DNA of 64,000 bases from Monocercomonoides exilis PA203. Taxonomy: Eukaryota; Protista; Preaxostyla. The translations under genes and the position numbers were made by a program. The stretch covers positions 310,001 to 374,000 of the forward strand of contig LSRY02000039.1 in NCBI GenBank assembly GCA_001643675.2, in the 5' to 3' direction. This document shows, piece after piece, positions 1,174 through 63,173 of this stretch (position 1 is the stretch's first letter; every line of letters begins with the position of its first letter). Below the pieces are notes generated by a model that did no database searches, had not been told where the DNA came from, and saw only the letters and a program-made list of their open reading frames with translations.

Positions 1174-2479
1174 ATGGAATCTTCAATAATTATAGATCTT
1201 CCTGGAAAACTTTGGGAAGGGATTGATTTAATTTTTGAAAGAGGAAAGGCAGGGAAGAAGTGTGGATTATCGATTATAAATGTTGAATAAACTTATTTTT
1301 GTAATATTTTAAATTTGAAGGACATACGATGAGATTATTGTTCGTTTAACAAAAAATCACATGTCTACAAAAGCGTTTTATGAAAACATAAAGTCACGAA
1401 AGTTTCAAGATTTATCAGAAGGAGGGTTTGCTTCATTATAATAAATGTGTCTAAGTAATGGTAATACCTTGATTTCTATTATAATATAGTGCAATACAAA
1501 TCGTATGGAAGGGATTGAAAGAGCGAATAGCATCGATTGAAAAAGCATCATTTGATTTTATGCAAAAGATTGAAGGTGTTTTGACAAAAGTAAAGGCAGA
1601 AGCTAAAGTCTATGAAGAATATTTCAAGACCCTTGAGCAAGAGCATCAAAATTCACTGAAGAAGAAGAAGCTTGCACACGAAGAAGCTGCAAGGGTTTGT
1701 TTTATCTTTTGAGAAATTTTTCACAAATGTGTTTCAGAAAAGAGAGAAATACTGTTTTGCATTTGGTGAATGGGATGAAGCCGACGCTGCTTATTCCAAA
1801 GTCAAAGATGACCTGGGATCAAAAGCTGACAAAAAAATTAAGGCATGAATCATCGATATGTTTTTTGTGAATTAATTCTGATATCAATTATCCAAATATG
1901 TAGTTGATGAAGACAATGACAGAGAAACTGAAGGAAAAGATGAACACTGAGATGCTATATGTGGACGCCACAAAGGTTTGCCAGGCAGCAGAAGAAGAAT
2001 ATGAGAGAACGATGTATCGCTTACTGAGAGAGTTTGAAGAATTGGAGGCAAAACGACTGAAAACCACTCAGGAAAGCCTGAAGTTGCTTATGACTTCTTG
2101 GATGGAGGTATGTGAAAGGGGGGAGGAAAAAAGAAAGAGAGAGAGAGAGAGAAAGAGAAAGAGATAAAGAGAGAGATAAAGAGAATTGTTAAAATGTTTA
2201 AAGACAGCTATGCATTAAGCATAGTTAATTTTTTTTCAACTTTTGTTTCAAATAATAATTATAAAATCACTTTATTTATTTCTAATCTTTAAACACTTCC
2301 TCTCCCCTTTCCAGGAGCTGCTTATTCACCAGAAGAATGTTTCTGTGTGTTTAGAGCTGTTGAATGAGCTTGATCCAGTTCGCGAACTTTCCCTCTTTGT
2401 CGCCCGCAACTGCACAAGAATACAGCACCAGCGCTTCTCTGAGCCAAAGTTTTGCAAGAGAGTATGCAAAGTGGCGCAT

Positions 2480-2510
<31 letters not shown>

Positions 2511-5500
2511 CATTCTTTTTGAACTTTATTGTTGTGATTGTTTGAAATTGGCATTCTATATTCGTTGTTATTTATTTATATATTCGTTGTTTATTTTTTT
2601 GTTTATTTTAATTAATGAATCATTAACATCCCACACATTCATTCAATGTGTTGCTATCTTTTCATTCTCTAAACAATAATTATTATTCCTATTCTGATAG
2701 CAACATGGTCCAAACGAGCCTGTGACTCCACCTCCTCCCAAATTCTGGATGCCTCCTCCGCCTTCTGCCCCTTCAGCTTTTCTATCATTATCTTCTTCTT
2801 CTTCCAATCCTCTTACTTCTTCGCCTCCTCTTCTTCCCCATGCCTCCTCTAATTCTTCTCTCCATCAGTCGATTTCCCGCACTTCATCCTGTTCTTCATC
2901 TACATCTCCCACTTCTCCAACCTCTTTTCCTTCTCTTGGGCCTCTCAGCTTGTCAAACGCAGCTGCCCCGCTTTCTTCTTCAAGCAGCATCACTTCAGCA
3001 TCACACCTTTCTATTTCTTCACTTGCTCCATCTGCTGCTATCACTTCATCTGATCCGTTCCTTCCTTCTTCTTCTGCCTCTGCTTCTTCTTCTTCTTCTT
3101 CATCTTCTTCTTCTTCTTCTGTGTTTGCTTCTGCATCTGCCTCATCCCCCTTTTCCGCCCCTTCTTCTGCTGCCTCTTCTCGCTGCTCTTCTCCAACGAT
3201 GCATTCACTCTCGTTGCAGACATCGCTATTCACCTCGCCTTTTGTGACAGATCAGTCCTCTGCTTCCTTTGCGTCTCCGTTTGAGACAATCCAAGGGACA
3301 GCATTGTCAGCTACTGCTGCTGCTTCTTCTTCTGCTTCTGTGCCGAGTGGGGAGAAGAAGAGAAGAGTGAAGAAAATGAGAAGGAAGGTGAAGAAGACGA
3401 AGGTGGTTGCACGCAGCAAAAGAGAGGTGCGAATGAAAAATGTGAAGAGACAGCAAGAAGAGAGGAGGAAGGAGAGGGAGGAGAAAAGGAAAGAGGAAGT
3501 GGAGGAGAGAAAAAAGAGAGAGAAAGAGGAAGATGCAGAGCTGAGCACTCGGGTGTGGTACTTGGCTGTGTATGAGTATCGTGCTGAAGAGGATGAGGAG
3601 CTGAGTGTGAGTGTGGGGGATATTGTGTATGGAAGATTGAGGAAGAAGAAAGAGAAGAAGGAGAAAGAAGGAGGAGGAGGAGGAGGGGAAGGGGAAGAAG
3701 AGGAAGATGATGATGATGATGATGATGAAGGGTGGGTGAAAGTGACGAATGGTGTTGGTGAGTCGGGGATTGTGCCAATGAACTATGTGAACGAATTGGA
3801 AGGAGGAGCAGCCTTTGAAGAAGTGAGAAGAGAGATCGAGAGAAGAAAGATGAAAAGGGAAAGGGAAAGGTTGGAATATGAGAAGAGAGTGAAAGAAGAG
3901 GATGAAGAGGAGGCGAGAAAGGAAAAAGAAGAAGAGGCGCCTAAGGAAGGTGAAGATGACATCACAGAAGTAGAAACAGAAGTAGAGACAGAGGTGGAAG
4001 AAGAGATTGAGTGTGATGAAGGAGAAGGAGGAGAAAGAGGAGGAGGAGAAAGAGAAAGAGAAGGGGCAGACAGTGTGGAGTTTGGGCACGTGAAGAGCGG
4101 AGCAGAGCAAAGTTCGAGGAATCCATCGAGGACATCAAGTGTTTGCTCGCGAAAGAGCAGAGAAGAGGAGAATAAGAAGGGGATAGTGAGAAGATGGAGC
4201 AGCGTAGGGGAACGAGGCAAAGAGGATGTGAGAATGAAAGGGAAAATGGAGATTGGATATGAAAGTGAGGAGGAAGGAGACGAAGGAGACGAAGAAGATG
4301 GGAGGAAAGGAGGGAAAGGAGGGAAAGGAGCAGATGATGGGGATAGTTCCATATCAGACGAGGCACTTCTGATGGATGTTGAGGATGCACTGGGATACGA
4401 CGAGAAAGAAGAGGAAGAGAAGATGGAGAAAGAGAGGAAGGCGAGAATGGAGGAGAAGCATAAAAGAAAGGATAAAGAAGGAAATGCAGCTGCGCTGATG
4501 TCGATGATTGCAGGGGAGCACTCGAACGAGAAGAAGAAGGAAGAAATTGAAGGGAATGCGAATATGAAGGAAAGTAGCGAAAACAATGAACATGAGTATG
4601 ATGATATTGAAAATAATCTGAATCTGACAGAAGAAGAGAAGAAAAATGAAAAACAGAAGAGGATGCTGTTGAAGATTGGAATAGCGAACAATGTTGTTGA
4701 TGGAAGCAAAGAAGAAAAGAATGCAGAAGAAGAAGAAGAAGGAAAAGGATTGAATATTAAGAAAGATAACAAGGAAGAAACGAAGAGTGGAGAAGAAGGA
4801 ATGAAAGAAATAGAGAAAGAAGAGAAAGAAGAAAAGCAGAAGGAGAATGATAAAAGTGTAGAGATAAACAAAGTAAAATTGGATGAGAAAGAGAAAGAAG
4901 AAAATGGAAATGGAAAAGGAAATGACACTAAAAAAGAAACTCATAGCGATTCAGATGGAAAAGAAAAGGAAAAGGAAAAGGAAAAAATTGAAGAAACATC
5001 ATTGAGAAAGGAAGAAGCGCAAGCGACTAAAGAAAATGTTGATGACAAAACAGAAGATGAATTGAAGGAGGTTAAAAATGCTTCATCTTGTAAAGAAGAA
5101 GCATCCAGTGAAAAAGAGGCAGAAAAAGAGAAAGAGATTGCAAGTGGCAAAGCATCAGAGGAGAATCAGAAGGATTCTCCTGATAAAGAAGAAGTCAAAG
5201 ATGAAAGGAAAGAAGAAGTCAAAGAAGAGGAAGACGAGGAAGAGGAAGAGGAAACTTTTCCTGCAATTGTATGTTAACATATCTTTATAAATATTCTTTT
5301 TAAATTTCTTTCCTGAATTTTTTCACAAACCAAAATGTCACTTATCTTGCTATTTATATTTCTTTGGCTTATTTTATTTATTTATAATATTTTTTTTGTT
5401 CATTTATTCATTTATTTCATTCTGTTTGCAGATTTTGTACAACTTCAAGGCAACTGGAGAAAATGCCATATCTGTACAAGCAAACGAGGAGGTGCAAATG

Positions 5501-5590
5501 ATTGACGAAGAAGCAAATGGCTGGATTTATGTGATTAAATCAGATGGGACTGAAGGTTATGTTCCAAAGTCGTTTGTAAAGAAGAAGTAG
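1174..5590 (+). CDS. F-BAR (FCH)-like coiled-coil plus two SH3 domains (FCHSD/Bzz1-like architecture), multi-exon, with Ser- and Glu/Lys-rich linkers
   Basis: ATG 1174 (KLWEGIDLIFERGKAGKK, FCH-like) followed by helical exons to ~2461. SH3-1 is YLAVYEYRAEEDEELSVSVGDIV...EGWVKV...GIVPMNYV (~3559-3790). SH3-2 is ILYNFKATGENAISVQANEEV...GWIYV...GYVPKSFV, stop TAG 5590. The F-BAR call is less certain than the SH3 calls. Confidence 0.75.
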
Positions 5591-6338
5591 AGAATCTGAA
5601 AAAAAAGATAAGGAAACAAAGAATATTTATAATTTATTTATCGAAACTTTGCGTTCTTTTCTATTATTTTTTGACACATTTATTTTTTTTTTTTTTTTTG
5701 ATTATTCTTCTTTTTATCTTCAAAAATAATGAGATGATTGCATTGTAATAGTAATTATGTATTAATTTCACACGATTCACATCATCGTTTAGACTTTTTA
5801 GATGTTTTTGTTTGTGCTATTTTAAAAGCCACCAAACATTTTTATTTTTTAATTTTTTTAGGTTTAGTTACTATTTTTTGTACTTTGTTTTTGTATTTGT
5901 TTCACATTTGAATTAGATATTAATTGACTTTGTTAAAACATTATTTTTCATTAATATCTTCCAACTTGATGTTTTCAATTAATAACTTCACTTGGTGATT
6001 CATGTTTGTCTTATTTCTTCTTCTCTTTTATAGTTGATAATATGAGCGTAATTCTTGTTCTAGTTTAATTATATTTTCATCTTAATATACTTCCATTTAT
6101 CTTCTTTATTGATAAAAGATTAAAAGACTGATTATCAGTTTTATGATTAAGATCGTTTTTTTTTAAATGAAATACATAAAAAAATTATTGTATAATCAAC
6201 CAGATAAAAAAAGAAAAGAGAAACAACAAATTTTGCCATGAATATCAATCATCTCATTTTTTCATTGATGATTATTCAACAATCAGATTTTTTTTTTTCA
6301 TTTGTTTATTTATTTTTTCATTTTTTGCTATTTTATTC

Positions 6339-6492
<154 letters not shown>

Positions 6493-7991
6493 TGTTAAAT
6501 ACACTTCAGAAAATTCTTCAATAACAATTACTGTTGATGAATTAATAATTCGTCTTCAACTGATAAAAAATATATAACAAAAAGTGAAATTTTAAGAGAA
6601 TTGTTTTTTATCATTCACATGGATTTTTCAACAAAAAAATATGGGGTTAAATATGGACTTTCAAGCTTTTTATGCACAAAGCTTGAAAAAATTGTTTCAC
6701 TTATAACATTTTTGAACTTTATCAGGTTTCAAAAAATTTTTGATTTTCATATCTGAAAACAAACTACATTGAAATAATTTCAAAATGTTTTCCAACATTT
6801 CGCTATTTTCAAAAAATGGACACATTTTTATTGTGGTTTTTGTTCTCAAAAAGTCAATGAAAAGTGCATAATTTTTCAATGAAAATGCCTGGGCATATGG
6901 AGAAGATCATGGTATTCCATGATCCATGCCCTCAATTATAAAAAGATTTTGATATTTCTTATTGTGTTTATTGGGTTTTAGGGTTTTGACGAATTAAACA
7001 AGTTCGCATTGGATATTGTGATAATTTAGGGTTTTTCCGAGGAATATTAGGGTTAGGGTTAACCCTAAAAGAGATTTTTAAAATGAAAATTATAAAAATG
7101 GTGGGTAGGATCTCATTGGTACCAGGATCTACTCCACTTGCCAATGCCTGAAGTGAAATATGCTGCCCTAAATGGTTTCAATAAAATATTGTCAACATGT
7201 TATAACATGCATTAATATGGGTAATTATTTTTGTAATCATAACTTTTTTCGAAGTGTTAATTTTTCGAAGGTTGTTTGTCACAGGGAAGAGATTTTTTAT
7301 TAAAATGCAAAAAATTGTCAAAACTATTTCGAAGATAAATATTTAATATGAATTAAAAACGAAGATATCTTTTATAATCCTTTTATCTTTTCAGTATTAT
7401 TTTAATGAAATACAAGGGAAATTTATGAACCGAAATATTTGAATGAAAAAATATGATTTCAAAAATAATCTCACATGTTTTATTTGAAAAATCAATAGCA
7501 AAAACTTTTGAATATATCTTTATTCCAATGTACTTGAAATAATAACATTTGCCACTTTTCAAAAAGAATGATACACATATCAACATGCCAAAAAAACTAT
7601 GATTTCAAAAAATTACATCCACACTTGTATTTGATTTATTTTTTTCAAATATATTTCTTAATTATATAAATTTGACTGAAAAAGTTTTTTGATATTGAAT
7701 TGTTTTTGATGTTACAACTTCAAAAAGAATTACACTCGTTACCAATATATTTTGATTTGAAAATTATGAAAGTTGGAGAGTCTATTGTCAAAATTGAGCA
7801 TTCCATGAATAGTTTTATTTAACCTAAAAATTAACCATTAACATATTTTTTTGAAGAAAAATCCATGTGAATGATAAAAAATAATTCTCTTAAAATTTGA
7901 CTTTATGTTGAATATTTTTTATAACCCTGGGTGACGTGAAGAAAAAAATTCGCAACGTCCGTCACCTATTTTCCACTTCAATAAAATAAAA

Positions 7992-8055
<64 letters not shown>

Positions 8056-8465
8056 AATATAAGAAAATATGAATTATTATTACATTTATTTGATTAACAT
8101 TAATCGATAATTTAATTTTCTTTCTTTCTTTCTTTCTTATTTTTGCATCTTTGGATCAATAATTCCCGTTATTTTATTATTAGAATATAAATCAAAGTGA
8201 GCTGTTGTGTTTTGTGATACAATCTGCAGATGCATAAGAGGATGGAATGTGTGTCAATTTTGTAAATGCTGTTTCTAAAGATTTCAATTCGTCAGTTTCT
8301 TTTTTGTGTTCGTCAACTTTGTTCGAACAAAATTTGAGACAAAATGCTCTGTAGCTTCTATACTAATCATATAAAAATTGCAAAGTGTGTAACTGAACAA
8401 TATGCAAGTGTCTGATCATTGTTGCATTTTAAGTCTTGATTATTGCAATTTTTATTTTTGATTAT

Positions 8466-9745
8466 TTTTTTGAGCTTTCATTTAGCATCGAGGAAGAACA
8501 TTGACAAAAAATCCATGAAGCGAATGAAACAAAGAATGGAATGAATAACGATAAATCAATATCTGTTTTCACAAAAAAGCAATTCGACGGAATACACATT
8601 ATAATTGAAGAATTAAAATACCAGTTGAAATTCTTATTCTACAGAAATTTTTTGGATATTACAATGTTTCTTAAGATTTGCGGATTTTATTTTTTGAAAG
8701 GATTTTTATTGAACAAAATATCTAAAAGCATGACGATTTATTTTGTAAAAATAAAAAAAGAAAAAAGTTAGAAAGGAAGAAAGTTATTGAATGACATTTT
8801 TGAATTTAATATTTAACCTGACAAAAGGATTTCTTCAGAATTGTTATATGTCTGTGTTCCTTGTCTGCTGAATGCTGCTTCAAGCAATGAGGTAAGCGAA
8901 GAAACACAATAAGAAATGAATGATGTTTTCCTGGTTACGAGCGATATAGGTGAATATGCATGTGTAAGCATTTCTTCTTCTATTTTGACATTTTTGGAAA
9001 TTTTAGAAATTTTTCATTGGTTTTTTGTACAAAAACTGCATCTGAATGAAATCAAAGAGATTATGAAATGTCATCAAGAATACAGAAATCTGACTCATCT
9101 TGCTTCTCAATCAACTTGGCAGTTTTTGATAAACCGTTTCTTCAGCAATGAACGCATCGAAAGAGTTGTTGCGAATGAGCTGCATTTTGGAAGAATGGCA
9201 ATTAGATAACTGAAAGAGCAGAGAGAATGTGATGATACGAAAAGAGAGAAAGAAAAAGTAGATGGAGAATTAGAAACAAAAGGAGAGCTTTTTTATTGAT
9301 ATGGCTCCGAACATTAGAATATTTCATCTGGTCATGCGCACGTTGGGGTCAAGAATATGCAGAGCTTATCAGCTTCATTGTTTGGATGTTAAAATCTGCA
9401 AAGGTGAATAATGAAATGATTATCAACTGTTGTATTTATTTATTGAGAAGCTCAGCAAGGAACAGTGCTGTGAAAATTGATGACTTGTTGAGAAGTGAAG
9501 CCGTTGATGCTGCTTTGGAGAAGAAACAGCAGCCAACGTTGAAAAAAGGTTTGGAATTTGATAGCTTGAATTTTTCATTGCGATTTCTAGGAGATTGAAA
9601 AAAGAAGAGAATTATAAAATTGTAGAAGCGAAAAGATAAGAGTTGTAAAGGAAATATTGAAATGAAGAAAAAAGGGTTGAGAATATCTTTATATGTTTTT
9701 AAAAATATGAACAGTTTTCTTTATTCAATTTTGTGGTTCACATGC
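8466..9745 (+). pseudogene. Decayed copy of a helical hypothetical-protein family (resembles the highly expanded Monocercomonoides family), located inside the hAT
   Basis: Fragments SVFTKKQFDGIHIIIEE, ELLYVCVPCLLNAAS, KLHLNEIKEIMKCHQEYRNLTHLASQSTWQFLINRF...VVANELHFGR and SAVKIDDLLRSEAVDAALE, broken by stops and frameshifts. The family match is from memory and needs BLAST confirmation. Confidence 0.65.
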
Positions 9746-11594
9746 ATGGTGTATTAATTATTATTCTCAATATAATGATAAAAATAAATATTCATGTTTT
9801 GTTCATAAAGAATCAATGTTCAATTTTTCTTTTCTTGTCATTTCTTAAAATCGAAAATGAATAGTCTTTTTTTGTTTTTTCAAAACACTTCTATTATTTC
9901 TATTTGAAATGAAACGAAATAAAAACTTTTGAACTTTGAAAATTAACTAAAAAATATTCAAGGATTTGACAAAAAATGGAAAAATAAAAGAAAATACTTG
10001 TGATTTTGACAATTCCTCATTTCTTTTACAGAAATCTTTTTCAAACAATTAACAAACAAAATAACTGCAAAGAAAAATTCAAATGCATCACTGTTTAACA
10101 TCTTAACTGAAAAATTACGTCTTTCACAGATGCTGGACTTCTTTTCCCATTTGGAAATCTGTTTGGATTTTTTCATTGAATAAACTTCAACAAACCTCAT
10201 CCAGAAAATGAAGAATCAACAAATTGAGAAATGGAAAAAATAATGAGTTCGGATGATTCACATCGAACCGAAAACCTGTATCAATCTTTATTGATCTCAA
10301 CAACAAAAACTGCAATTTAGTGTATGTGCAACCAGTTCACCTGAAATGTCTCTTTTTCTATTGAAAATGATGCAAACGTCGCTAAAGCTCAACTTTAACA
10401 ATTTGTTCAGACTTCATTGTCTCCAAATTTATTTGTTCGAAAATTTTCATAATGTTTTCATATCGAATTGAATGGTACATCGTTGTCTTTTTTTGGGCGA
10501 TCGCAAATAGTTGTTAACAAAGCAACATTTCCCGTTTTTCTAGAGACATTTATCTTGAATCCACATCAAAATAATCAACTGCACCAAATGCACACTCTCA
10601 AGCGGAAGTTTGTTCTTCCGCTTCAATATGTTCATTTGGACTTTCATTTGTTCGTCTCGTTTATTTCATGCAGCTAATCTTATACTCTTTTCATAATTCC
10701 TTCTTCACTCTCTTCCGAATCAACTTCAGAAGAGATGAAAGAAATCCCGAAAAGGTTAATTTCACATTTTTTTGAACAATGAATTAATGTTTGAAGTTGA
10801 GAACACCTTATATTTTGATTAAGAAAGTGTATTTATTATCATTTCATCTGTTCTAAAAGAAGCATTAGAAGCAGTTGGGGCTTTTGGAAGTGCAACGAAT
10901 TGAAACAGAAATTTCTTTGCTTTGCTCTTCTTTCCTTTTGAGTGGCAAAATAGTGAAATAAATTATCCGTAAAGAAGGCTTCCAAGACTTCAGAAAAGAT
11001 AAGGAAAATACCCTTTGGAGGAAATGAAAATTTGTTTAGGAAGAGGAAGAAGATCTTGAATAAATCAACGTATGCATCACACTTCTAATAACATTTGATG
11101 ATGTAAATGAATTTGATAATTTATTATTCAGTTGTCTTATATCCACGGTTTTTATTTATATGCACTATTCCCGAATTTCATTCGGCTCACATTCCAAAAA
11201 ATAAATATTGTAATATTTCCACTCATCCTTTTTAACGAATGAATCAAACTTTTTTTTATAAGTTCAGAACAATAAATGCGAAAATTTCAAACACTAATTT
11301 GCTTTTTGGTTTTCTCTTGAAACTGTTTTTTCTGAAAGCACCACAAATTTGTTTGTTTCTATGTGAAGTTATTTCCTATTTGAAAACATTTTCTCATTCA
11401 ACCCCGTAAATAGCAAATTGTTCCCATTTCCTTTCATTTTAATTTTTTTTTTTTGTTTTTTGTCTTGAACGAAGATGAATTGAAAAAAAATATATATAAA
11501 TTAAAGTTTTCTAATTCGTTTTACGAAAAGGTTTTGTCGAAAGAAAGTTTTTTAAAAGGAAATGAAGCTATAACGAAATGATAACAGAAACGTT

Positions 11595-41042: not shown

Positions 41043-51611
<10,569 letters not shown>

Positions 51612-51925
51612 TATTTTAATTTAATTTAATTTAATTTTTTTTAATAATTATTAAATGAATTTATTTATTTTTACGGACTTCTGAAAGTTGTTATCTTGTT
51701 TCATTTGCTTTTTTATCATTGACATCTCACCCTGTAGTTATTTAATTTCTATTTATGCATTTAATTTCTTTCTTATGATGTGGTTGCAGCATAAGTGAAA
51801 TCTGTTGTAATATTTTGTATGTGATTGTTTTTGTCATTTCATTTTCAAATAAACTTTTGTAATGGTTATACCCTTACTTCTTCTATCATTTCACATTCCT
51901 TGATCTCTGTCTTGAGTAAACGGTG

Positions 51926-54900
51926 ATGAGCTCAAAGCAGGTTCAAGGCCAATGGTCTGTGAGTCGACAACTTCCACCAGTTCGCTGGAGGGACTTGACA
52001 CCTCCACAAATCGACTTTTTTCTATCTTTGAATGTGGACATATTTAACGCTGGGACAGTCCTACATTCACGGAATTTTGAAATTAAAGTTCGTCATCATT
52101 ACACAATATTATTTTATTCACAAAAATTTCAATTGATATTTTTTCTTTACTTGTTATGATGCGCATAACATTTTTAATAATTTTTCGATTTTATGATCAA
52201 ATACGAATTAGTTCGTTTCAAATTATTTGGAATTCAAACTTAGAATATGTTATACACAGAACAAACTTTTGCAATTTATTCCAGCTGGAAAAACTACTCC
52301 TACATACATGATCTTCAATACTGGGCTCCAAATGGCAAAAACTTTCAGGGATATTTATATCCTCCTTGAATCTGGTATACATATTTTATTTTTTAGCCTT
52401 GATTTTTATTCATCGTTTTTAAATGTTCTTTTTTTGCTTCTGAATGAAGATGGCGTCTTATGGAATCTTGCAAATATTTTACCAGCTGAGACATTGAACA
52501 GCTCATTGCTGAATTATCCAGTAACAGAATTAAAAGAACCTCCAAAGCCGCCCTCTTATAAAGCGGATACATTTCTTCCCACACAACCAGATGATATTCA
52601 TATTAATGCACCAACAAAATCACTTTTAGCATTCTTTAAGTATGACGTAATGAAATAATTTTGTTTATTGTTATTATTAACAATATTTTATCTTTTTTAT
52701 ACATCACAATATTTATTTCAAACAACTTCAAAAAAAAAAAAAAAATAACCAAGCAATTTCTTCCAACACCATGTGAAACGCCACCAGACCGGATCGGCAT
52801 CTCTTCTGGCGAAGCAGTTTGCGCAACGCAATTCACAGGAAGTGCAGAGCCTGTTTCTGCAGGCAGCAGAAGTCAGCCAGCGGAGGGCAAAAGCGCAGCC
52901 ACGAGAAATTATTCCGTATTTGGTGTTTATCGATTCTGTTTCCCGCACAAAGAAGAAGGAGACTGAGATGGCAGATAAGGCAAAAATTGATAGGGAGAAA
53001 GAGAAAGAGAGGGAAAAAGAAAAAGAAAAAGAAAAAGAGAGGGAGAAGGAGAAAGAAAAAGAGAAAGAAAAAGAGGAAAAGAAAGAAAATGAACCAGAGA
53101 AAAAGGAAGATGAGAAAGAGGAAGAAAAAGAAAAAGACAAGAAAGAAGAAGGAGAAGAGAAAGAGAAAGAAAAAGAAAAAGAGAATGAGGACAAAGAAGT
53201 CGAACCGACAATTGATGCAGATGCCGCAGCAGCAGCAGCAGAAGGCGACAAAGCAAATGAGCAGAGCGGAAGTGACACAAAAGGAACAACTCAGCCATCT
53301 GCCTCAGGAACTGAGCAATCTGCACCTTCTTCTTCTTCTTCTACTACAACTTCTTCATCTTCGGATTCATCATCGTCTTCTTCTGCTTCTTCTTCAACAC
53401 CTTCTTCTGCACCTTCCACTTCCACTTCCTCTTCCACCTCTTCTTCAACCACTCCATCAGCATCCACTTCCACTCCAACTCCAACTCCAACTCCTTCATC
53501 ATCATCATCATCATCATCATCATCTTCTTCTTCTTCCTCGTCTTCCTCTTCTTCTTCTGAAAAGAAACTCGAAGAATCCGACAAACAGCTCCACTTCTCG
53601 TTCCAGACTGGGTTTATCATCCCTGTCTGCCTGTTCTCTCAGTCTGTATCCTCACCCGACTTCGCCCTCGCCCTCACTCTGGTGAAGCGGACGCACCAAG
53701 TTTCAGAAGACTCCCTCACCCCGCAGCAGCTGGAGCAATACCAGTCGCAGATCCAGGCATCATCTAACTTGGGCAACGAAGGCGGCGAGAGAGGAGGCAA
53801 AACAGGGCGAACCATCTCCATCACGCGCCTGGAGTATGACGTGAGTGGGCTGCTAACGCTGGAGCAGTCCTTCTTCGGTGCGTCTCTTTTGTGCCGTGTG
53901 GATTCTCTCTGGCTGCACAACGCGTTCCACGAGAAGGTGCTGGGCGCTGGCAGACACTCGAGCAGCCATTCACAGCAGCATGCACTGACTGCTGGGTCGC
54001 AGTCGGGTGCTGCTTCTGCTGGGGGCAGCAGCGCAAGCGCGGGAGGAGGGATGAATGTGAATCCTCAGCCTGGGAGTGGAGGAGGAGGCGGAGGCGGAGG
54101 AGGAATGAGAGAGAGAGAACAAGAGAGAGAAATGCAGGCAGGATCCGTTTCTGGAATGTCACGGCATCTTGCGTCGATGTCTTCGAGTGCTGAGATGAAA
54201 GAGAGGGCAGAAAGGGCAGAAAGAGCAGGGCGCAGGGAGCACAGATCGCGAGGTGCTGATGGGGCGAGGGTTCATCAGTACCAGCTGGCTGGCAGCCCAT
54301 CTCAGCGGACAAACCACTCACCTTCCCCATCCACAGCAGCAGGGGCGGCAGCAGCAGCATCCAGAGAGGAGTTGCACCGCCTCGCGAAGGAGAGATCCAA
54401 CATGGCGATGCTGGAGCAGAATGGGAAGCAATTTGTGGCATACAACGCATCTGGCTCACACGCAGGAGACAAAGAGCGAGCAGTCGCTGTGGCCACACGA
54501 GGTGCAGCTGCCTCGTCTTCTGTGACTGGGCAGCTGAACTCGGCAGCGAATGAGAAGGATGCTGTGGAGGTTGTGGGAGACGGTGAAGGCAGCATCTCGT
54601 TTGGCAGGGCACGTGATGTGCTCCGCAGCTCGATCGACAGCGGGAGCCAAGCACACACCCATTCGCACTCACATTCACACTCTCATTCACACAGCAGGCA
54701 CAGACACCACACATCCACTCACTCGATCTCGCCTGTGGAGTCAGCGTCGAATGTACAGGCGTCTCCAGTCAACAGCAACAGCAACAGCATGAACATCGTC
54801 AGTGGAGGAGCGAAAGCAGAGAAAGAAGGAATATCTCCTTCACACTCTGCTCATTCTGCTCATTCTTCTCACGGGCATGGACACAGCCACAGTCACAGCC

Positions 54901-55773
54901 ACCACACGCAGCAGCAGGTGGGTGATGAGACAGTTGGGAGCGAGCTGTCAGGGAATGGGCAGCTCACAGCGAGTGCAGAGAGAGAGAAAGACGGAGAGGT
55001 GAATGGAGAAGCAGAGATGGAGAGCGGAAGAGAGGGTGGGAGAGAGAAGACGAGGTATGAGAAGGACAGTGCAGTTGCGAAAATCGGCGAGAAGTCGGGT
55101 TTTCGTAACTCCCCCTTTGCAACGGAAGACATGAAAGGAGAGATCCTTGTGTCTGAGGCAAGAGCGCACGGAAAGCAGACGTTGCAGAGTGCAAAGGGGG
55201 AGGATACTGACGGAGCAGAGGCCAACAGAATGGCCTTTGATCTGGCTCTGCAACGCAAAAGTATGAAAGGAAGTGAAGATGAGCACAGTTATGGCTATCA
55301 ATATGGACATGGATATGGATATGGAAATGGCGATGGAGAAAGAGAAGGAGTTAGCGCAGAAGATGGATTGAATGGAGATAGTCGCAGAAGAAAGTATGGA
55401 GAGGTAGAAAACAGTGCCAAACTGTCTGCTGCATCTAAAAGTGCAGCTGAGAGTGAGATGGGCTTCATTGGAGGAGATGACTCACTTGTTGAGCCAGAGC
55501 CTCTGATGAGTCAGACAAGCACAGAGAATCCAATGGAGACATCAAGTTCTTCTTCTTCTGCATCATCTGCATTGATTGAAGAAAAAAGCAAGACATCTTT
55601 ACAATCATCTCCATTGACACAAAGAACAGCAGGTGAAGGAGAACGAGAAGGGCTGTCGCCTTCTGCTTCGCCTGCAAGTTCGCATCAATCAACAGGAAAT
55701 ACTCTTCAATCGCCAAACACTGCATCCTCAAAGCTGTCTTCAGCTCTACCTTCTCCTTCTTCTGGCACATCTG

Positions 55774-55810
<37 letters not shown>

Positions 55811-56620
55811 TTCTTCTTCTTCTTCTTCTTCTTCATCTTCATCCACCACATCATCTACACCAACAGCTGCAACAACAACAACGACATCTGCAATTAAAAC
55901 ACGCCCACGTGTGCAGCTGACAGAGGAAGAGTGGAAGAAGCGGCAGGAAGACATAGCCAATCTGAAGTCAGGGAAGAAGATCAGAGCACAAAGCAAAAGC
56001 GACCAGCAGACGAAGAAGTTCCGCAACTTGCAGGCAACAGGGGTGATTCCTTCGTCTCCTATTTCTTCAATTGGACTCGGAAACAGCCCATTCAGCTTTG
56101 ACAAAGGGTTTCTGCAGAGGAAAATGGATCCAGAGAAGGCAAAATCAGCGATGGGCAAAGAAGAAAGCGGGGCAGAACACAGCAGCCGGCTGAGCAGTGC
56201 ACATGGAAGCAGCTTAATAGAAGCATCATCATCAGCAGCAGTATCATCATCATCAGCACTGACAAAGGAAGGAGGCAAAGAATACTCAGAGCATTCACAC
56301 TTGCATTCACACGGACATTCATCACACTCTCCAATGAATGGGGTGAAAGACATGGGGAAAGAAGAATTAAAAGGAAGCATCCACAAAAGCTCTTCGCATC
56401 GGCTGACGAGTGCGGAAGCAATGAACAATGGAGAAGAAGAACAGCAGGCAGGCAGGCAGGCAAAAGCGAATGGGGCAGATGCTGCTTCTTCTTCTGCTGG
56501 TGGTGTTGCAGCGTCTGATGAGAGGCGTTCTGTGTCAGCAGATGACAAGCGCAACAGAGGGCTTAGCCAGCAGGAGGAGGAGAGGAGGGAGAGGAGAGAG
56601 AGAAGGGAACGGAGGGAAAG

Positions 56621-56657
<37 letters not shown>

Positions 56658-59318
56658 GAGAAAGAGAAAGATAGAGATGAGACAGACAGAGACAAATCCA
56701 AAGATGAAGGCGAATCTGAAAGCCAGAGGAGAGAGAGAGAGCATAAAAGAAGGAAAGAGAAAGAGCATCGTGAAGAAACAGTGGGCACGTCGAAGGAGAA
56801 GAAAGGAGAGGAGGAAGAAGGAGTCACCAAGCGCCATCATCGCCACCACACAGACGACAAATACGATGCACACGACGAGGCGCGGAAGAAGAGGAAAGAA
56901 GAGCGAAAGAGGCAGCATTCATCGCATCAGTCGCATCAGTCGAGTGTGGCTGGAGGAGAAGGAGAGGAGCAAGGGGGAGAGGAAGCGGAGCGGCCGATGG
57001 AGGAGCTGACAGAGAAGGAGAAGGAGAAGCTGAGGAAAGAAAGAAGACACAAAGAAAGGCTGCCGGAGAGGGAGAAGAAAAGAAAGCTGCTGGCAAAGAA
57101 GGCGGAGGCTGGCGAAGAAGCAGGCGAAGGAGGAGAGAATGCAGTGAGTGTTCTGGATGAGACAGCAAAGGATGTCCTTGCTGGTACCGTTGGACCATCC
57201 TCATCCTCATCCTCTTCTTCTTCATCGTCTTCTTCTTCTTCTTCTTCTTCCTCTGCTGCTGCATTGGCATCTTCCTCAACAGGAGAGAAAGGAGCAGCAG
57301 GAGCAGCCGGAGGAGCAGTTGTTTCAGCGTCTGCTGCTTCGAAGCGCTCGCATTTCCATCACTCGAAGACACACAGACACAGAGAAGAGGAAGGAGCAGG
57401 GGAGGAAAAAGTGAGGGGAACGAAGCACCGAAAGAAGGACAGGGAAGAAGGAGAGAAAGAAGGCGAGCGGAAGACAAGGGACAAAGAGAAAGGGAAGGCG
57501 AGGGAGGAAAGGGAGAAGCCGCAGATAACCGACGAGCTGATCAGCAAGATGAACGAGCAGGCGAAAGTGATGCTACCGTTTGGGTGGTGGCTTTTCTTGA
57601 ACATGCAGTACACGGTGGGGCTGCGGGAGAAGCAGTGCCTGCCAGAGGAGCTGTGGGAGGACGACGAAGACCAGGACGACGAGATCGCACGCATCTTCGC
57701 TGCTGCCGATGCAGTTGCGCAGTCAACAGAAGTCGCATCGGCAAATGCCATGTCCTCGTTCTTCAATCCAGAGACGTTTGCGCAGAACAACCCGTACTCC
57801 ACCTCGCGTGCAGAGGACTTCCAGAGCCACTTCCACAACAGAACACTCGGAAAATACGCTCAGGAATACACCACAGCAGCTGCATCGGCGGCGGCTGCAG
57901 CAGTCGCAGCAGCCGCAGCAGCCGCCGCAGCTTCGGCTTCTTCTCAGGTTTCTGCCTCTGCTTCTTCAGCTTCTGCAATGGCTGGTGCATCTGTGGCAGG
58001 AGTGGCTGGTGCATCTGCCATCAATGCAGCAGGCCAGGCTTCGATCTCCTCTGCCTCTGCGCTTTCATCCACAATTGCATCGTCTTCTGCGCTGTCTGCC
58101 ACAAGTGCTGTGCCAAATGTCAATGCACCATCGCCAATGGGACAAGGACTGATGGGAGCGCCTGGAATGATGCCTGGGCAGAATATGGGGCCGAATGCGC
58201 TGATGGCGCCAGGGGCAGGCGGATCGCAAGCACAGTCACTGATTCCTATGCCGAATATGCCTCAGCAGATGGCTGGTGGGCAGGCAAATGGAGTGGTGCC
58301 TGGTGTGGCACAGCAGCAGCAGATGCATCAACAGCAGATGGCTCTGCAACAACAACAGCAGCAACAGCAACAACATCAGCAATCACAGCAGATGCAGATG
58401 CAACAAGGGCAGCCTGCAGGTGCGGGTGTGGCAGGCAATGGGTTGATCAGCCAGCCGCCAAATGTGATGCCTATGAGCAACGCAGCGAATCTGCCGTCTG
58501 TTGGAATGGGAACTGGAATGAACACTGGAATGAATGGGGGCATGGGCGGAGGCATGGGTGCTGGAGGCATGCCGCCGCATATCCCGCCAGGAATGCCTAC
58601 GTATTCACAGCATCTGACGGGGGCAATGCAGCACACAGAGATGAGGATGAACAGCGTGTATCCTGTCTCCCAGGGGAACTACTCGTACGGAATGGGGCCG
58701 GGATCTATGAATCCACAACAAGCACAGACACAATCTTCTCTTCAGCAGCAGCAGCAGCAGCAACAACAACAGTCTCAAGGGCAGCCCTCTCTTCCAGGCA
58801 GCACCCAGCTCAATCCTCAGATGGGCGGTGCTTCTCTGCCTCAGCCCCAGCTGCAGCCAAATATCCCCATGCCTCGCACACAAGCCCCGCAGTCAGCACA
58901 GCAACAGAATCAGCTGCAGATGCCTGGGCAGCCTCAGGGGCAAGTCGGTGCAGGGCAGCAATCTTCTCTTCCTCAACTGCAACAACAACAACAGCAGCAG
59001 CAGCAGAAGACAGCTCAACAGTCTCCACAGTCACAACAGCAGAATCTGCTGAATCAACAACAGACAGGAATGCAGCCACATCTGAATGGAGCAGGCGGGG
59101 CAGTGGAGAAGAAGAAAGTGCCTTCGCCAAATCCATCTTCCACACCTTCTCTCAAGTCTGCTTCCACATCGCTCTCAGCCAATGCAGCTACATTTGTTCC
59201 TGCGAGGCAATCTTCAACGTCAAGTGTCTCTTCAAATGGGATACTTAACAATCAAGCAGCAATTGCAGCAGCATCTCCATCTCCACCTCAACAACAACAA
59301 CAACAACAGGCTCAATCA

Positions 59319-59358
<40 letters not shown>

Positions 59359-62300
59359 CGTCTCAGCCTCAGCAACAGATGCTGCAAGTGCAGAACCAGA
59401 TGTCTCCAATGCAGAGCGATGCACTTCAACCAGCACCTTCACTCCAACAGCAGCAACAGCAGCAGCAACCACAACCACAGCCACAACAAACGATGCTAAT
59501 GTCTTCTGCACAATCACCTTCTCAGACTCAACCTCAAAATCAACCTCAGCCTCAATCACAGTCTCAATCACAATCTCTTCTTCAACCACAACTGCAGGCA
59601 CCTCAACAACAACAACAACAGCCTCAACAACAGAACATGCACAACCCCCCTCCACTTCAGCAGCCTACGATGCATCCAATGCTGCCTCAGCAAATGAATG
59701 CAACTGGAAACATGGGACTTTTACCAACTGCAACTGCATCATCTCTTCTGCCCCAGCAGCAGATGAACAACACAACCATGTCACCGAATGCTCCATTGCC
59801 TGCTTCAGCGCCAGCAACATCGCCTCCAAGCGCAGCAAACACCACAAATACCGCAAGCCAACCTGCATCTATTCCTTCGAATTCTCCTTCGCAGCCGCAG
59901 ATGCCAATGAACAAGCAAGGGCAGACGCACATGGCTCCTCAGCTGGCATCAACGCCTCCTCCGCATTCATCTGCTGCCTCCCCTTCGTTTGTTCCTCCAT
60001 CTCCTGCTCCTTCCTCTGTCACATCAATGCAAAATCTCCAGACGCAACAACAACAACAGCAGCAGCCTCCGCAGCCGCAACAGCAGCAACAACAACAACC
60101 TTCTCCTCAAACCACCTCTCAAACACCTGGCCGTCCTGTCAGCACGAATTCCTTCCCTCCCGTCAATGCACAGCAGACAGCGACTTCACCTGGCATCAAC
60201 TCACTTCAGTCGCTTGCAGCATCACAACAATACTTGCTAGCCCAGCAGCAGTTACCGCAGCAGTTACAGCAGCTGATGCCTCAGATGGGGATAAATACAC
60301 AAGGCTCTGCTCTTCTTTCCTTTGTACCTGGAACGCCTGCACAACAACAACAGCAGCAGCAGAACCTTCAGCAGCAACACCCACAACAGCTGCAGCAGCA
60401 GGCAGCCTCGTCGCCAGTGGCAGCAGGATCACAGTTTGCGTATTCGCCTTCACAGCCACCGCCCACTCAGCATCCTTCTCTGCCTCATCAGCAACAGCAG
60501 CAGCAACAAAGTCAACAACAGAATCAACAACAGAATCAACAACAACAACAAAACATTCAAAAACAACAGCAAGTGCAACAGAACCAACAGAATCAGCAAG
60601 CTTCTCAGCAGACTCAACAACAACAGCAGCAGCAACATGGATTGATAGCATTACCAGCTGCACAAAACATTGCACCACCACATCCAGGTGACCAACAAAA
60701 CGTTGCTCTTCCTACGCAACAACAGCAGCAACAACAACAACTTCAGCAATCCCAACAGACACCCCAGACACAGTCTGCACTTCCTTTGCCTCCTGCTCAA
60801 GCAACTCTGACGCAGATGTCAGTACAGCCATCGTCCATCCTTCCGCAGCCGGGAACAACACTCAACCCTCAGCAAAATGTCACTTTCACTCTCCCGCCTG
60901 ACCAAAATCTCATGAATCTGCTTGCGAGCACTGGATTTATCATTCCGAATAATGCAATGCTCACCCAGTGGGCAGGCCAGCCTGCGATTGCACAATACGC
61001 CAATCCAGGTTTGAATGGACAGGTGGTGTATCAGCTCGGTACATCTCTGTCAAATTTAAACTTCATGCAGCATCCGTTTCATGTGCAGCAGTTGTTTCAG
61101 CCTGTTCAACAACAACAGCCACAACAACAGCCACAACAACAACAGCAGCAGCAGCAGCAACAACAACAACAACAACAACAACAACTCTTGCAAACACCAA
61201 CACAACACAGAGAAGAAGGAAGTGGAGAGCATCCAGCAGAACAACAACAACAACAGCAACAACAACAGCAACAACAGGACAATCAAGATGAGCAGAGACA
61301 GAATGGATCTAAAGCAGGTTCTGCTGAAAGTACACAAAGACACGCAGATGGCACGCCCATAGATCGAGAAAAGGAGTCTGAGTGGTCACAGCAGTCAGAG
61401 CGAGATTCAGAAGCAAGTGAGCACACGAAGGAGCTTCAGCCTGCAAATTCGCAGTATCTTCTTCCACAGCCGACGGTGCCTGGCCAAGCAAGCACAGCAA
61501 TGTCGCCAGCTGAAGCATCGCCACAGGCACAACATCAGGCTCTGTCTGTTCCACCGATGCCGCAGCTTTCTCAGCAGCAGCAACTGCAACTGCAACAGCA
61601 AATGATGCAGGCGCAGGCAGCTCATTTGATATATCAGCCATCATTCCCGATGTTTCAGTTGTTTCCACAAGCGCTGGCAGCAGGACAGAAAGGAGGTGCA
61701 ATACCAGAAGCGATGTATGCTCAGCTGCAGCATCAGATACAGTCTCAGCCAGCACAGTCAAATAGCTATCCCATGATGTCACTACTCCAAGGAGCCCCTT
61801 ATTTACCCCCACCTCCACAACGTCAGGCACAGCTGGCACTTCCTGGAGGAGATAGTTCTGCCTCAGGTGCCGCGCAGAATGCAGCTGGTGGTGCAATCGC
61901 CGGCAGCGGACAAGCAGCTGGCAGCAATGTGCAGGCGCAGCCTCCTACACAGCTTACGGTGCTGCCTCATGCAGGCTTTCCTTTTTCCTTTGGGGCATAT
62001 GGGGCTAATGCCTATTTCACAACCCCACAGCCGATGGGGCAGATAAGTTACCAGCAATCTCTTGGGCAGGCCCAGCAGCAGCAGCAACAACAGACACAAC
62101 AACAGCAGCAAATTCAAGCACTGAACCAAGCTCAATCTCAGCCCCAGCAACAGAATCAGCAGCAACCCCAGCTACAGGCACAAACACAGATACAGTCGCA
62201 ACCGCAACTTCATGCACAACCTCTGCCTCAGCTTCAGTCTCAGCCACAGCCTCCTTCTCAGCTATTGCCTCAACCGCAGCAGATGCAACAACCGCAGAAT

Positions 62301-63173
62301 CAACAGCTGTATCATACGCCAACTGCTCAGATGCAGGCACCCATGAATCTTCTTGGGGTGCCTCAAAGCAACACACAGCAGCCAAGCTCCAATTTGCCTG
62401 TTGAAGGCAGCGGAGGGACAGGCGGCATTGGGCTGCCTTTGGATCAGCAGCAGCAACAGCAGCAGCAACAGATGCAGCTGCCAGCTGGAATTCATCAGAT
62501 GGGCACACTTGCAGCATCACAGTTTGCTGGTGCTCCATCGCCAGCGCAGCAGCAAAAGGAAAGCATTCTCGGAATGGGGCCGCAGGCTCCCGTTTCTTCG
62601 GATCCTCTTTTTCCGCAGCCGCAATCAACTGAAAGACGAGGAAGCTTGCAGGTTCTGGATCACTTAGGATCTGTTGCATCGGCTTCTGCGTCTTCTCCGC
62701 AAGCGATTGGTTTGGGTCCAACAGGAGGCATTTCAGCAAGCACTCCTTCGCTTGCCCAAACACCAGCACTCGCATCTGTTCCACAGCCAGAGCATTCACT
62801 GCCGCAGATGCCATATCAAGGGCAGCAGATGAATAAAATGCACAGCCAATCGCATATGGAGACATACACATCAATTTCACAACATTCGAATCAGGCACCG
62901 AGCCTGACGGCATCACCATCACCAACACCACCACCTCGCCCTCCTTCTTCTTCTTCCATATCATCCTCTAACACATACTATCAACGCCACACTGGAGTCA
63001 ACCAGACAGGCAGAGAACGACCTGAGAGAAGCGGAGGAGGAGGGAGAGGCCATCCAGCAGGAGACGATGGAAGGATATACAGCGGAAAGATGAATAGAGG
63101 AAGGCAAAGCACTGGAAACACATCGACTTCTGGAGGGGGAAGAGGGCAGCATAGGAAGCATCCTAATCAGTGA
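51926..63173 (+). CDS. Giant (~3,600 aa) protein: N-terminal DUF3825-like domain, charged and His-rich linkers, PAM2 motif, Q/P-rich region, RG-containing tail
   Basis: Four exons (introns 52088-52211, ~52375-52449, ~52640-52753) splice in frame into the 3466-aa ORF. Motifs: NYLEF..YMIFNTGL..DIYILLE, QAAEVSQRRAK..EIIP, FIIPVCL..PDFALAL..YDVSGLLTLEQSFFGASLLCRVDSLWL; PAM2-like SLSANAATFVP at 59169-59201. Confidence 0.8.

Follow-up and report, generated by a model that had tools for sequence, protein, structure and literature searches.

A divergent DUF3825-like domain at the N-terminus of a giant, mostly disordered protein of the oxymonad Monocercomonoides exilis, with a candidate PAM2-type motif in its tail

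Which domain opens a giant, mostly disordered protein of the oxymonad Monocercomonoides exilis PA203, and what might such a combination do? The gene lies in a stretch of 64,000 nucleotides (NCBI GenBank assembly GCA_001643675.2, contig LSRY02000039.1, positions 310,001 to 374,000 of the forward strand), the whole of which is called the window here. It occupies positions 51926-63173 of the plus strand, with 4 exons and 3 introns, and its product has 3,644 residues. A preliminary description of this DNA, made without database searches, proposed that the N-terminus follows the pattern of DUF3825 (Pfam PF12873), a domain of bacterial and phage proteins, and that the same chain carries a PABP-binding PAM2-like motif, Q/P-rich sequence and GGRG motifs. 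The current work supports the first proposal: judged by sequence profiles, the N-terminal domain is truly homologous to DUF3825 but very divergent; it lies below the curated Pfam cut-off and passes a profile-profile test.

The gathering cut-off of PF12873 is 27 bits. Scanned exon by exon and open reading frame (ORF) by ORF, the window copy gave two collinear matches below this value, at positions 25-110 (14.7 bits, in the ORF of exons 2 and 3) and 212-238 (16.9 bits, at the start of exon 4). Two profiles were compared. The bacterial profile held 54 sequences, reduced to below 75 % identity; they were drawn from six proteins from Clostridia genomes (matches in 7 of the 401 searched, Pfam 158-255 bits) and eighty further ones from metagenome contigs. 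The oxymonad profile held two proteins of Blattamonas nauphoetae and 23 single-exon pieces of four M. exilis genes, namely the window gene and three paralogues. Exons were never joined, and the pieces were placed by hmmalign on a hidden Markov model (HMM) of the Blattamonas proteins only; the alignment was free of bacterial information. In hhalign the full oxymonad profile matched the bacterial one with a score of 89.7 and E 2e-12 (probability 97.7 %) over 212 columns, pairing oxymonad positions 46-335 with bacterial positions 32-247 of 248. The reversed oxymonad alignment scored 11.7 (E 0.71) and the best of 24 shuffles of 10-column blocks scored 28.4 (E 0.0026). Because the real value stands so far from both controls, DUF3825 homology is supported, and the two collinear Pfam pieces agree with the pattern first proposed. 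Without the window's own pieces the score was 77.4 (E 1.3e-10), and with the two Blattamonas proteins alone it was 35.5 (E 2e-4). Cruder MAFFT alignments gave probabilities of 74.9 % (E 2.6e-5) and 93.7 % (E 2e-7).

Some results weigh against this assignment. No single piece of the window copy reached the PF12873 cut-off in the scan by exon and ORF, and neither the three paralogues nor the Blattamonas proteins had any Pfam match. An AlphaFold2 model of a Blattamonas protein, made from a shallow alignment, was poor (pLDDT 50). The missing and sub-threshold Pfam matches, together with an identity of about 17 % between oxymonad and bacterial sequences in hhalign, could also be read as a chance or convergent resemblance, in which case the N-terminus would be an unrelated, oxymonad-specific domain. 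This reading is very improbable and is largely refuted by an E-value that spans nearly the whole domain in collinear order, with controls at least nine orders of magnitude weaker, and by a signal that persists when the window's own sequence is removed. Furthermore, where helices and strands are predicted in the weak oxymonad model, they follow the order of the bacterial model. The same sub-threshold scores bear out the earlier expectation that automatic annotation would miss the domain: all pieces fall below the cut-off, the relatives have no Pfam match, and both Blattamonas homologues carry the label of hypothetical protein.

The domain occupies exons 1-3 and the first ~400 codons of exon 4. 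Exon 1 (51926-52087; 54 codons) opens with ATG, ends at a phase 0 donor, in which AAA is followed by GTTCGT, and carries a conserved G-x-W...P-x-V-x-W-R motif N-terminal to the DUF3825 core. In the Blattamonas-only HMM this exon corresponds to positions 3-56, and it is found in all three paralogues as well. Intron 1 (52088-52211) has 124 nucleotides (nt) and 22 % G+C. Exon 2 (52212-52374) encodes the first helix and the FNTGL strand of the core (NYLEFKLRI ... FNTGLQ ... DIYILLES), matches HMM positions 52-117 with an independent E-value of 1.3e-12, and is paired by hhalign with the bacterial ILxNY..FNTGL..IY block. As intron 2 (52375-52449; 75 nt, 23 % G+C) is open in frame, 52212-52655 reads as a single ORF of 148 amino acids (aa). 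Exon 3 (52450-52639) encodes the conserved W strand and the P-x-x-P..F linker and matches HMM positions 83-160; the W and P of this exon that are near-invariant in bacteria are kept in all six oxymonad sequences. Intron 3 (52640-52753; 114 nt, 17 % G+C) is followed by exon 4 (52754-63173), one open frame of 3,472 codons with a TAA stop, which far exceeds every other frame of the region in length. The three introns are of the GT..AG type and have phases 0, 1 and 2, and the coding sequence sums to 10,932 nt, exactly 3,644 codons. The intron lengths of 75-124 nt and G+C contents of 17-23 % are in line with the averages published for M. exilis introns, 119 nt and 27.6 % (PMC8767320).

Within exon 4, the domain continues in three segments separated by two low-complexity insertions. 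The long helix and next strand (AAEVSQRRAK...EIIPYLVF; 52755-52955) match positions 201-245 of the Blattamonas HMM and are paired by hhalign with the bacterial AIDxAxxRV..NYKxAIPQYY block. Insertion 1 (52956-53585) follows, between EIIPY and FIIPVCL; it consists of ~210 residues, K/E-rich and then S/T-rich, is lacking in the Blattamonas homologues and varies among the paralogues. The strands GFIIPVCL and PDFALAL (53586-53690), with a conserved P and D, correspond to bacterial HMM positions 189-217, which are also matched in the paralogues on contig 68 and on contig 6 near 1,675k. Insertion 2 (53691-53825; ~45 residues) precedes the C-terminal motif, LLTLEQSFFGASLLCRVDSLWL, at 53826-53942, which covers Pfam DUF3825 positions 212-238 of 238 with 16.9 bits; this C-terminal block was matched to bacterial DUF3825 by hhalign with a probability of 93.7 % (E 2e-7). 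In the bacterial model, the strands on either side of each insertion are neighbours joined in a short hairpin, and hairpin loops are positions where large insertions are tolerated. The order of peptides read earlier through three spliced introns (NYLEF, YMIFNTGLQ, TFRDIYILLE, PPKPPSY, AAEVSQRRAK, EIIPY, FIIPVCL, PDFALAL) was recovered as claimed, together with the C-terminal motif ending in DSLWL and a K/E/S insertion that had been put at ~200 aa.

Judged by conservation, the four-exon model with its predicted junctions is secure, because all three intron positions and phases are the same in the independently annotated gene BLNAU_414 of Blattamonas, because exons 1, 2 and 3 and three blocks of exon 4 match the Blattamonas-only HMM in collinear order, and because the domain straddles the junction of exons 3 and 4, with its C-terminal half inside the giant frame. 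RNA contigs from four metatranscriptome runs of one study contained 0.90-0.91 of the sampled words of 51700-57600. This agrees, though only indirectly, with the 0.909 predicted for transcripts that lack just the 5' flank and the three introns of the model; removal of both low-complexity insertions by splicing as well would give ~0.78. It could be supposed that the model is wrong and that there are separate genes, with the 3,466-codon open frame in one and the 5' exons outside it; this is hardly credible in view of the domain that crosses the exon 3/exon 4 junction, the intron at the same place in BLNAU_414, and the identical layout of the three paralogues, in each of which a giant open frame comes after small 5' exons.

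These paralogues were detected by searching the M. exilis genome with the ORF of exons 2 and 3 and the C-terminal part of the domain. They lie on contig 68 (~47-58 kb; giant frame listed at 2,475 aa) and on contig 6 (~1.670-1.678 Mb, 1,539 aa; and ~1.607-1.617 Mb, 3,129 aa), the last being referred to as the fourth paralogue. Their domains contain K/E-rich and poly-S insertions and keep the C-terminal motif. An exhaustive HMMER search of 1.84 billion representative proteins with the exon 2-3 ORF returned one true match, BLNAU_414, a hypothetical protein of 358 aa, of which BLNAU_12691 (376 aa) is a paralogue. Three other matches were rejected; they fell on the intron-encoded or a low-complexity stretch of the query. 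Both Blattamonas proteins comprise the entire domain in compact form, free of insertions, and BLNAU_414 has no tail, the next gene on its contig beginning after 227 bp. Scanned with PF12873 in six frames, the whole M. exilis genome gave no candidate. A profile word search with the family alignment recovered the two Blattamonas proteins only. No relative was obtained from a metagenome scan with the Blattamonas pair, no match when the C-terminal portion was compared by words with candidate proteins of 221-703 aa, and no usable match from ESM Atlas look-ups with both domain pieces. The domain family has so far been found only in oxymonads, in four giant M. exilis genes and two Blattamonas proteins.

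The surroundings of these genes deserve a short description. Near-identical actin genes were observed directly upstream of two paralogues (contig 68:55934-59188, minus-strand ORF 3-974; contig 6:1675767-1678964, minus-strand ORF 2-994; L010:8972-10000), which points to a segmental duplication that carried actin and the DUF3825-like gene together. In the fourth paralogue (contig 6:1605500-1615499, minus-strand ORF 1932-9998), ~1,400 C-terminal residues are of ordinary complexity and have no Pfam match; this region may hold one or more undescribed folded domains. Upstream of the window gene, positions 46771-51072 form another giant low-complexity frame, of 1,433 aa, also without a Pfam match.

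Does the oxymonad domain retain the features on which a function in bacteria could depend? The near-invariant columns of the 54 bacterial sequences were mapped through the alignment onto the six oxymonad sequences. Those kept include the N, T/S and L of FNTGL, W95, the prolines P115, P186 and P198, the aspartates D208 and D242, A231 with its A-(Y/F), and the final W245-L246. Six polar positions are replaced in every oxymonad sequence: T46 by K; K182 by S, R or N; Q187 by Y or F; Q194 by G or A; N234 by H or G; and R236 by S or T. Such a pattern is expected of a domain that retains its fold but has lost or rebuilt a polar functional site. The AYxNAR segment had been described as replaced in the window copy, and this holds for all six sequences, in which its arginine is S or T and other near-invariant polar residues are lost too. 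The accompanying suggestion that the domain is catalytically dead is supported in the sense that the bacterial polar signature is gone, and in that sense only.

The same data allow a different interpretation, in which the oxymonad domain has remained enzymatically active, perhaps as an RNase with a re-wired active site, and the disordered tail only targets or regulates it. Monocercomonoides and Blattamonas have strongly conserved core motifs in common (N of FNT, W, three P, two D, final WL), which implies purifying selection beyond the fold alone, and RelE-type RNases vary in their catalytic residues. The loss of T46, K182, Q187, Q194, N234 and R236 throughout the oxymonad set speaks against an enzyme and, to our knowledge, no enzymatic activity has been described even for bacterial DUF3825. 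An active oxymonad enzyme is thus considered distinctly unlikely. Because the polar residues are replaced, the domain is most likely a non-catalytic module that binds RNA or a partner protein.

Information on the ligand may be sought in the bacterial family. Some bacterial members carry one or two cold-shock domains (CSD) and one has weak OST-HTH matches; in the ESM Atlas clusters, CSD occurs in 70 % of one and OST-HTH in 13 % of another, while a third is entirely viral. The fusions to cold-shock domains mentioned in the preliminary description are confirmed in this way; those to OST-HTH, added here, are more weakly supported. A bacterial DUF3825 protein of 786 aa (G038:C24:4632-8456, minus-strand ORF 1459-3816) was observed to have a weak OST-HTH/LOTUS match of 17.2 bits; its N-terminal region is long, and two segments within it are internally repeated. 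DUF3825 corresponds to the phage family phrog_11623, whose function is not annotated. Gene neighbourhoods gave no common partner: no family is shared by more than 3 of the 81 bacterial DUF3825 loci, no antitoxin- or immunity-like neighbour is conserved at them, and PADLOC returned no defence-system match for the DUF3825 part.

An AlphaFold2 model of the bacterial domain, based on the alignment of 54 sequences, is confident (pLDDT 93.8, pTM 0.86). Compared with the PDB by Foldseek, it had nothing at E <= 0.001, with RelE/ParE-like structures at probabilities of 0.4-0.8, and a profile search of PDB sequences with DUF3825 found nothing. In an exhaustive VIA-align search, bacterial residues 138-250 were placed on RelE, ParE, HigB, YafQ, YoeB, BrnT, CdiA-CT and colicin D. 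The alignments to the RelE/ParE group cover 80-95 residues, nearly the full length of the toxins, with Z values of 4-6.1 and a root-mean-square deviation of 3.4-4.8 A. This single group accounts for most of the top 24 rows, which speaks for a real topological resemblance. A RelE/ParE-like topology of the C-terminal half of bacterial DUF3825 is treated as a lead only, as suggested by the model. Two points detract from it and from the wider interpretation: the Z values are below the best background of 7-8 that is typical of a VIA-align search, and DUF3825 was without mention in the literature searched, the function of the family being uncharacterised. An RNA-directed role is the most economical hypothesis for DUF3825, in view of the CSD and OST-HTH fusions and the modelled RelE/ParE-like resemblance.

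What the domain is joined to in M. exilis is the second part of the question. The Q/P-rich region (57813-62612, plus strand) comprises ~1,600 residues, with 17-42 % Q per 200-residue block and 8-20 % P, in keeping with the more than 1,400 aa claimed before. It contains the PAM2-like motif of the earlier claim, a match at 59166-59204 (plus strand; core L-S-A-N-A-A-T-F-V-P), which is the protein's sole match to the strict pattern. The pattern applied was L/F/P-N/S-x-x-A-x-x-F/Y-x-P, of the type of ELM LIG_PAM2_1. Farther upstream in exon 4, the part that includes 56573-56610 is K/E/R-rich. Two GG(G)RG motifs (63033-63050 and 63132-63146) were located, again as claimed, in a G/R-rich C-terminal tail at 63033-63146 (plus strand), which is unique to the window copy among the paralogues. 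An island with the core G-W-W-(L/M)-x-L-x-x-Q-(Y/W), at 57516-57680 (plus strand), is common to the window gene and the paralogues on contig 68 and on contig 6 near 1,675k. Two paralogues have a looser PAM2-type core, F-(N/S)-S-S-A-x-P-F-x-P, within poly-S sequence. Candidate partners are encoded in the genome of M. exilis, in which six MLLE loci exceed the PF00658 cut-off, at 55-81 bits.

The tail could also be a neutral low-complexity expansion in which the PAM2-type motif arose by chance; the protein would then act like the stand-alone Blattamonas domain, with no link to PABP or mRNA granules. Low-complexity expansion is common in the M. exilis genome, and the composition of the tail differs among paralogues, being Q/P-rich here and S-rich or K/E-rich elsewhere, with the RG tail in the window copy only. 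The pattern also has a measurable background: all window frames of at least 100 aa, 35,961 residues in total, contain 3 matches, and at this rate one match in a protein of 3.6 thousand residues is neither rare nor strong alone. The looser cores of two paralogues each depart from the strict pattern at one position, and no such motif is present in the fourth paralogue. The Blattamonas homologues, finally, are stand-alone proteins of ~360 aa with no tail, so that PAM2, polyglutamine (polyQ) and RG sequence are not needed for the ancestral role of the domain. On the other side, giant open tails are kept in all four M. exilis paralogues, and the PAM2-type core (F/L-x-x-x-A-x-x-F-x-P) and GWW are the few islands shared across tails that otherwise cannot be aligned. 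Composition shuffles lead one to expect 0.007-0.017 PAM2 matches per protein (0.017 in the window protein). A purely neutral tail is therefore regarded as rather unlikely, though it deserves to be kept in mind.

A related observation concerns the folded domain itself. The exon 3 peptide P-P-S-Y-K-A-D-T-F-L-P (52545-52583) fits a loose PAM2-like pattern, and its equivalent in bacterial DUF3825 is a conserved L-P-x-x-A-x-Y-F block. Calls of PAM2 in the M. exilis genome that are made by pattern only need care for this reason.

Taken together, these data lead us to favour, by a modest degree, the view that a non-catalytic module derived from DUF3825 and a disordered tail form an adaptor or scaffold directed toward MLLE proteins in mRNA-protein particles (mRNPs). 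The domain would have originated in bacteria or phages, in which it is often joined to nucleic-acid-binding domains of the CSD or OST-HTH type. Oxymonads would have kept its structural core while the near-invariant polar residues of bacteria (K, Q, Q, N, R) were replaced, and in M. exilis the module would have been joined to more than 3,000 disordered residues with the PAM2-type motif, the GWW island, the Q/P-rich region and the short RG tail. Such a tail could link the ligand of the domain to MLLE-domain proteins such as PABP. This role as an mRNP scaffold is plausible, with PAM2 binding putative. Two things weaken the idea: the Blattamonas homologues have no tail, and one PAM2-type match is of modest specificity. 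A bolder version joins all the leads: DUF3825 would be a RelE/ParE-type (BECR) RNA-targeting module of bacteria and phages, acquired laterally by an ancestor of the oxymonads, that gained introns, lost its catalytic or polar site and was domesticated for binding to RNA or ribosomes; in Monocercomonoides it would have become tethered to PABP through PAM2 on a giant prion-like tail, so that a toxin-like RNase fold was turned into an mRNP scaffold. In this complete form the proposal is unlikely.

Several points of more general importance may be drawn. The oxymonad branch adds to DUF3825, a known family that is still uncharacterised, a eukaryotic variant with introns and a novel architecture, and one that is invisible to standard annotation. 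The confident model, its RelE/ParE-like C-terminal half, and the CSD and OST-HTH fusions provide a first fold-level lead for DUF3825. The compact Blattamonas form and the giant Monocercomonoides forms, with their disordered tails and candidate PABP-docking motif, offer a natural comparison. If the proposed mechanism is true, an amitochondriate gut protist would clearly exemplify how eukaryotic mRNA metabolism can recruit a domain of prokaryotes or phages; if it is false, a correct domain assignment for six hypothetical or unannotated proteins still results.

Comparison with known systems places the window protein more precisely. It shares with bacterial and phage PF12873 proteins the FNT(G/S)L strand, the W, three prolines, the (I/L)(I/L)P-x-C-L strand, D-x-A-L, and the final A-(Y/F)...D-x-x-W-L. 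The oxymonad copy differs from them in its extra N-terminal segment (exon 1) and its introns, the M. exilis copy in its large loop insertions, and the window copy in its fusion to the long disordered tail rather than to CSD or OST-HTH. In RelE/ParE and BECR-fold RNase toxins, the order of two helices and four strands resembles that modelled for bacterial DUF3825 residues 138-250; these toxins, however, show no sequence similarity to DUF3825, which is more than twice as long and has no conserved antitoxin-like neighbour. BLNAU_414 and BLNAU_12691 of Blattamonas have ~41 % identity to the window copy in exon 2 and the same polar replacements, whereas insertions, tail, PAM2, polyQ and RG sequence are all features of the giant form. 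Ataxin-2, GW182/TNRC6, PAN3, Tob and LARP4 are disordered mRNP adaptors that bear PAM2. Their folded domains are LSm, kinase-like, BTG or La rather than DUF3825-like, and there is no homology; by analogy, however, the PAM2-type peptide of the window protein, set in long Q-rich disorder beside one folded domain, is the arrangement that would be expected of a PABP-docking adaptor.

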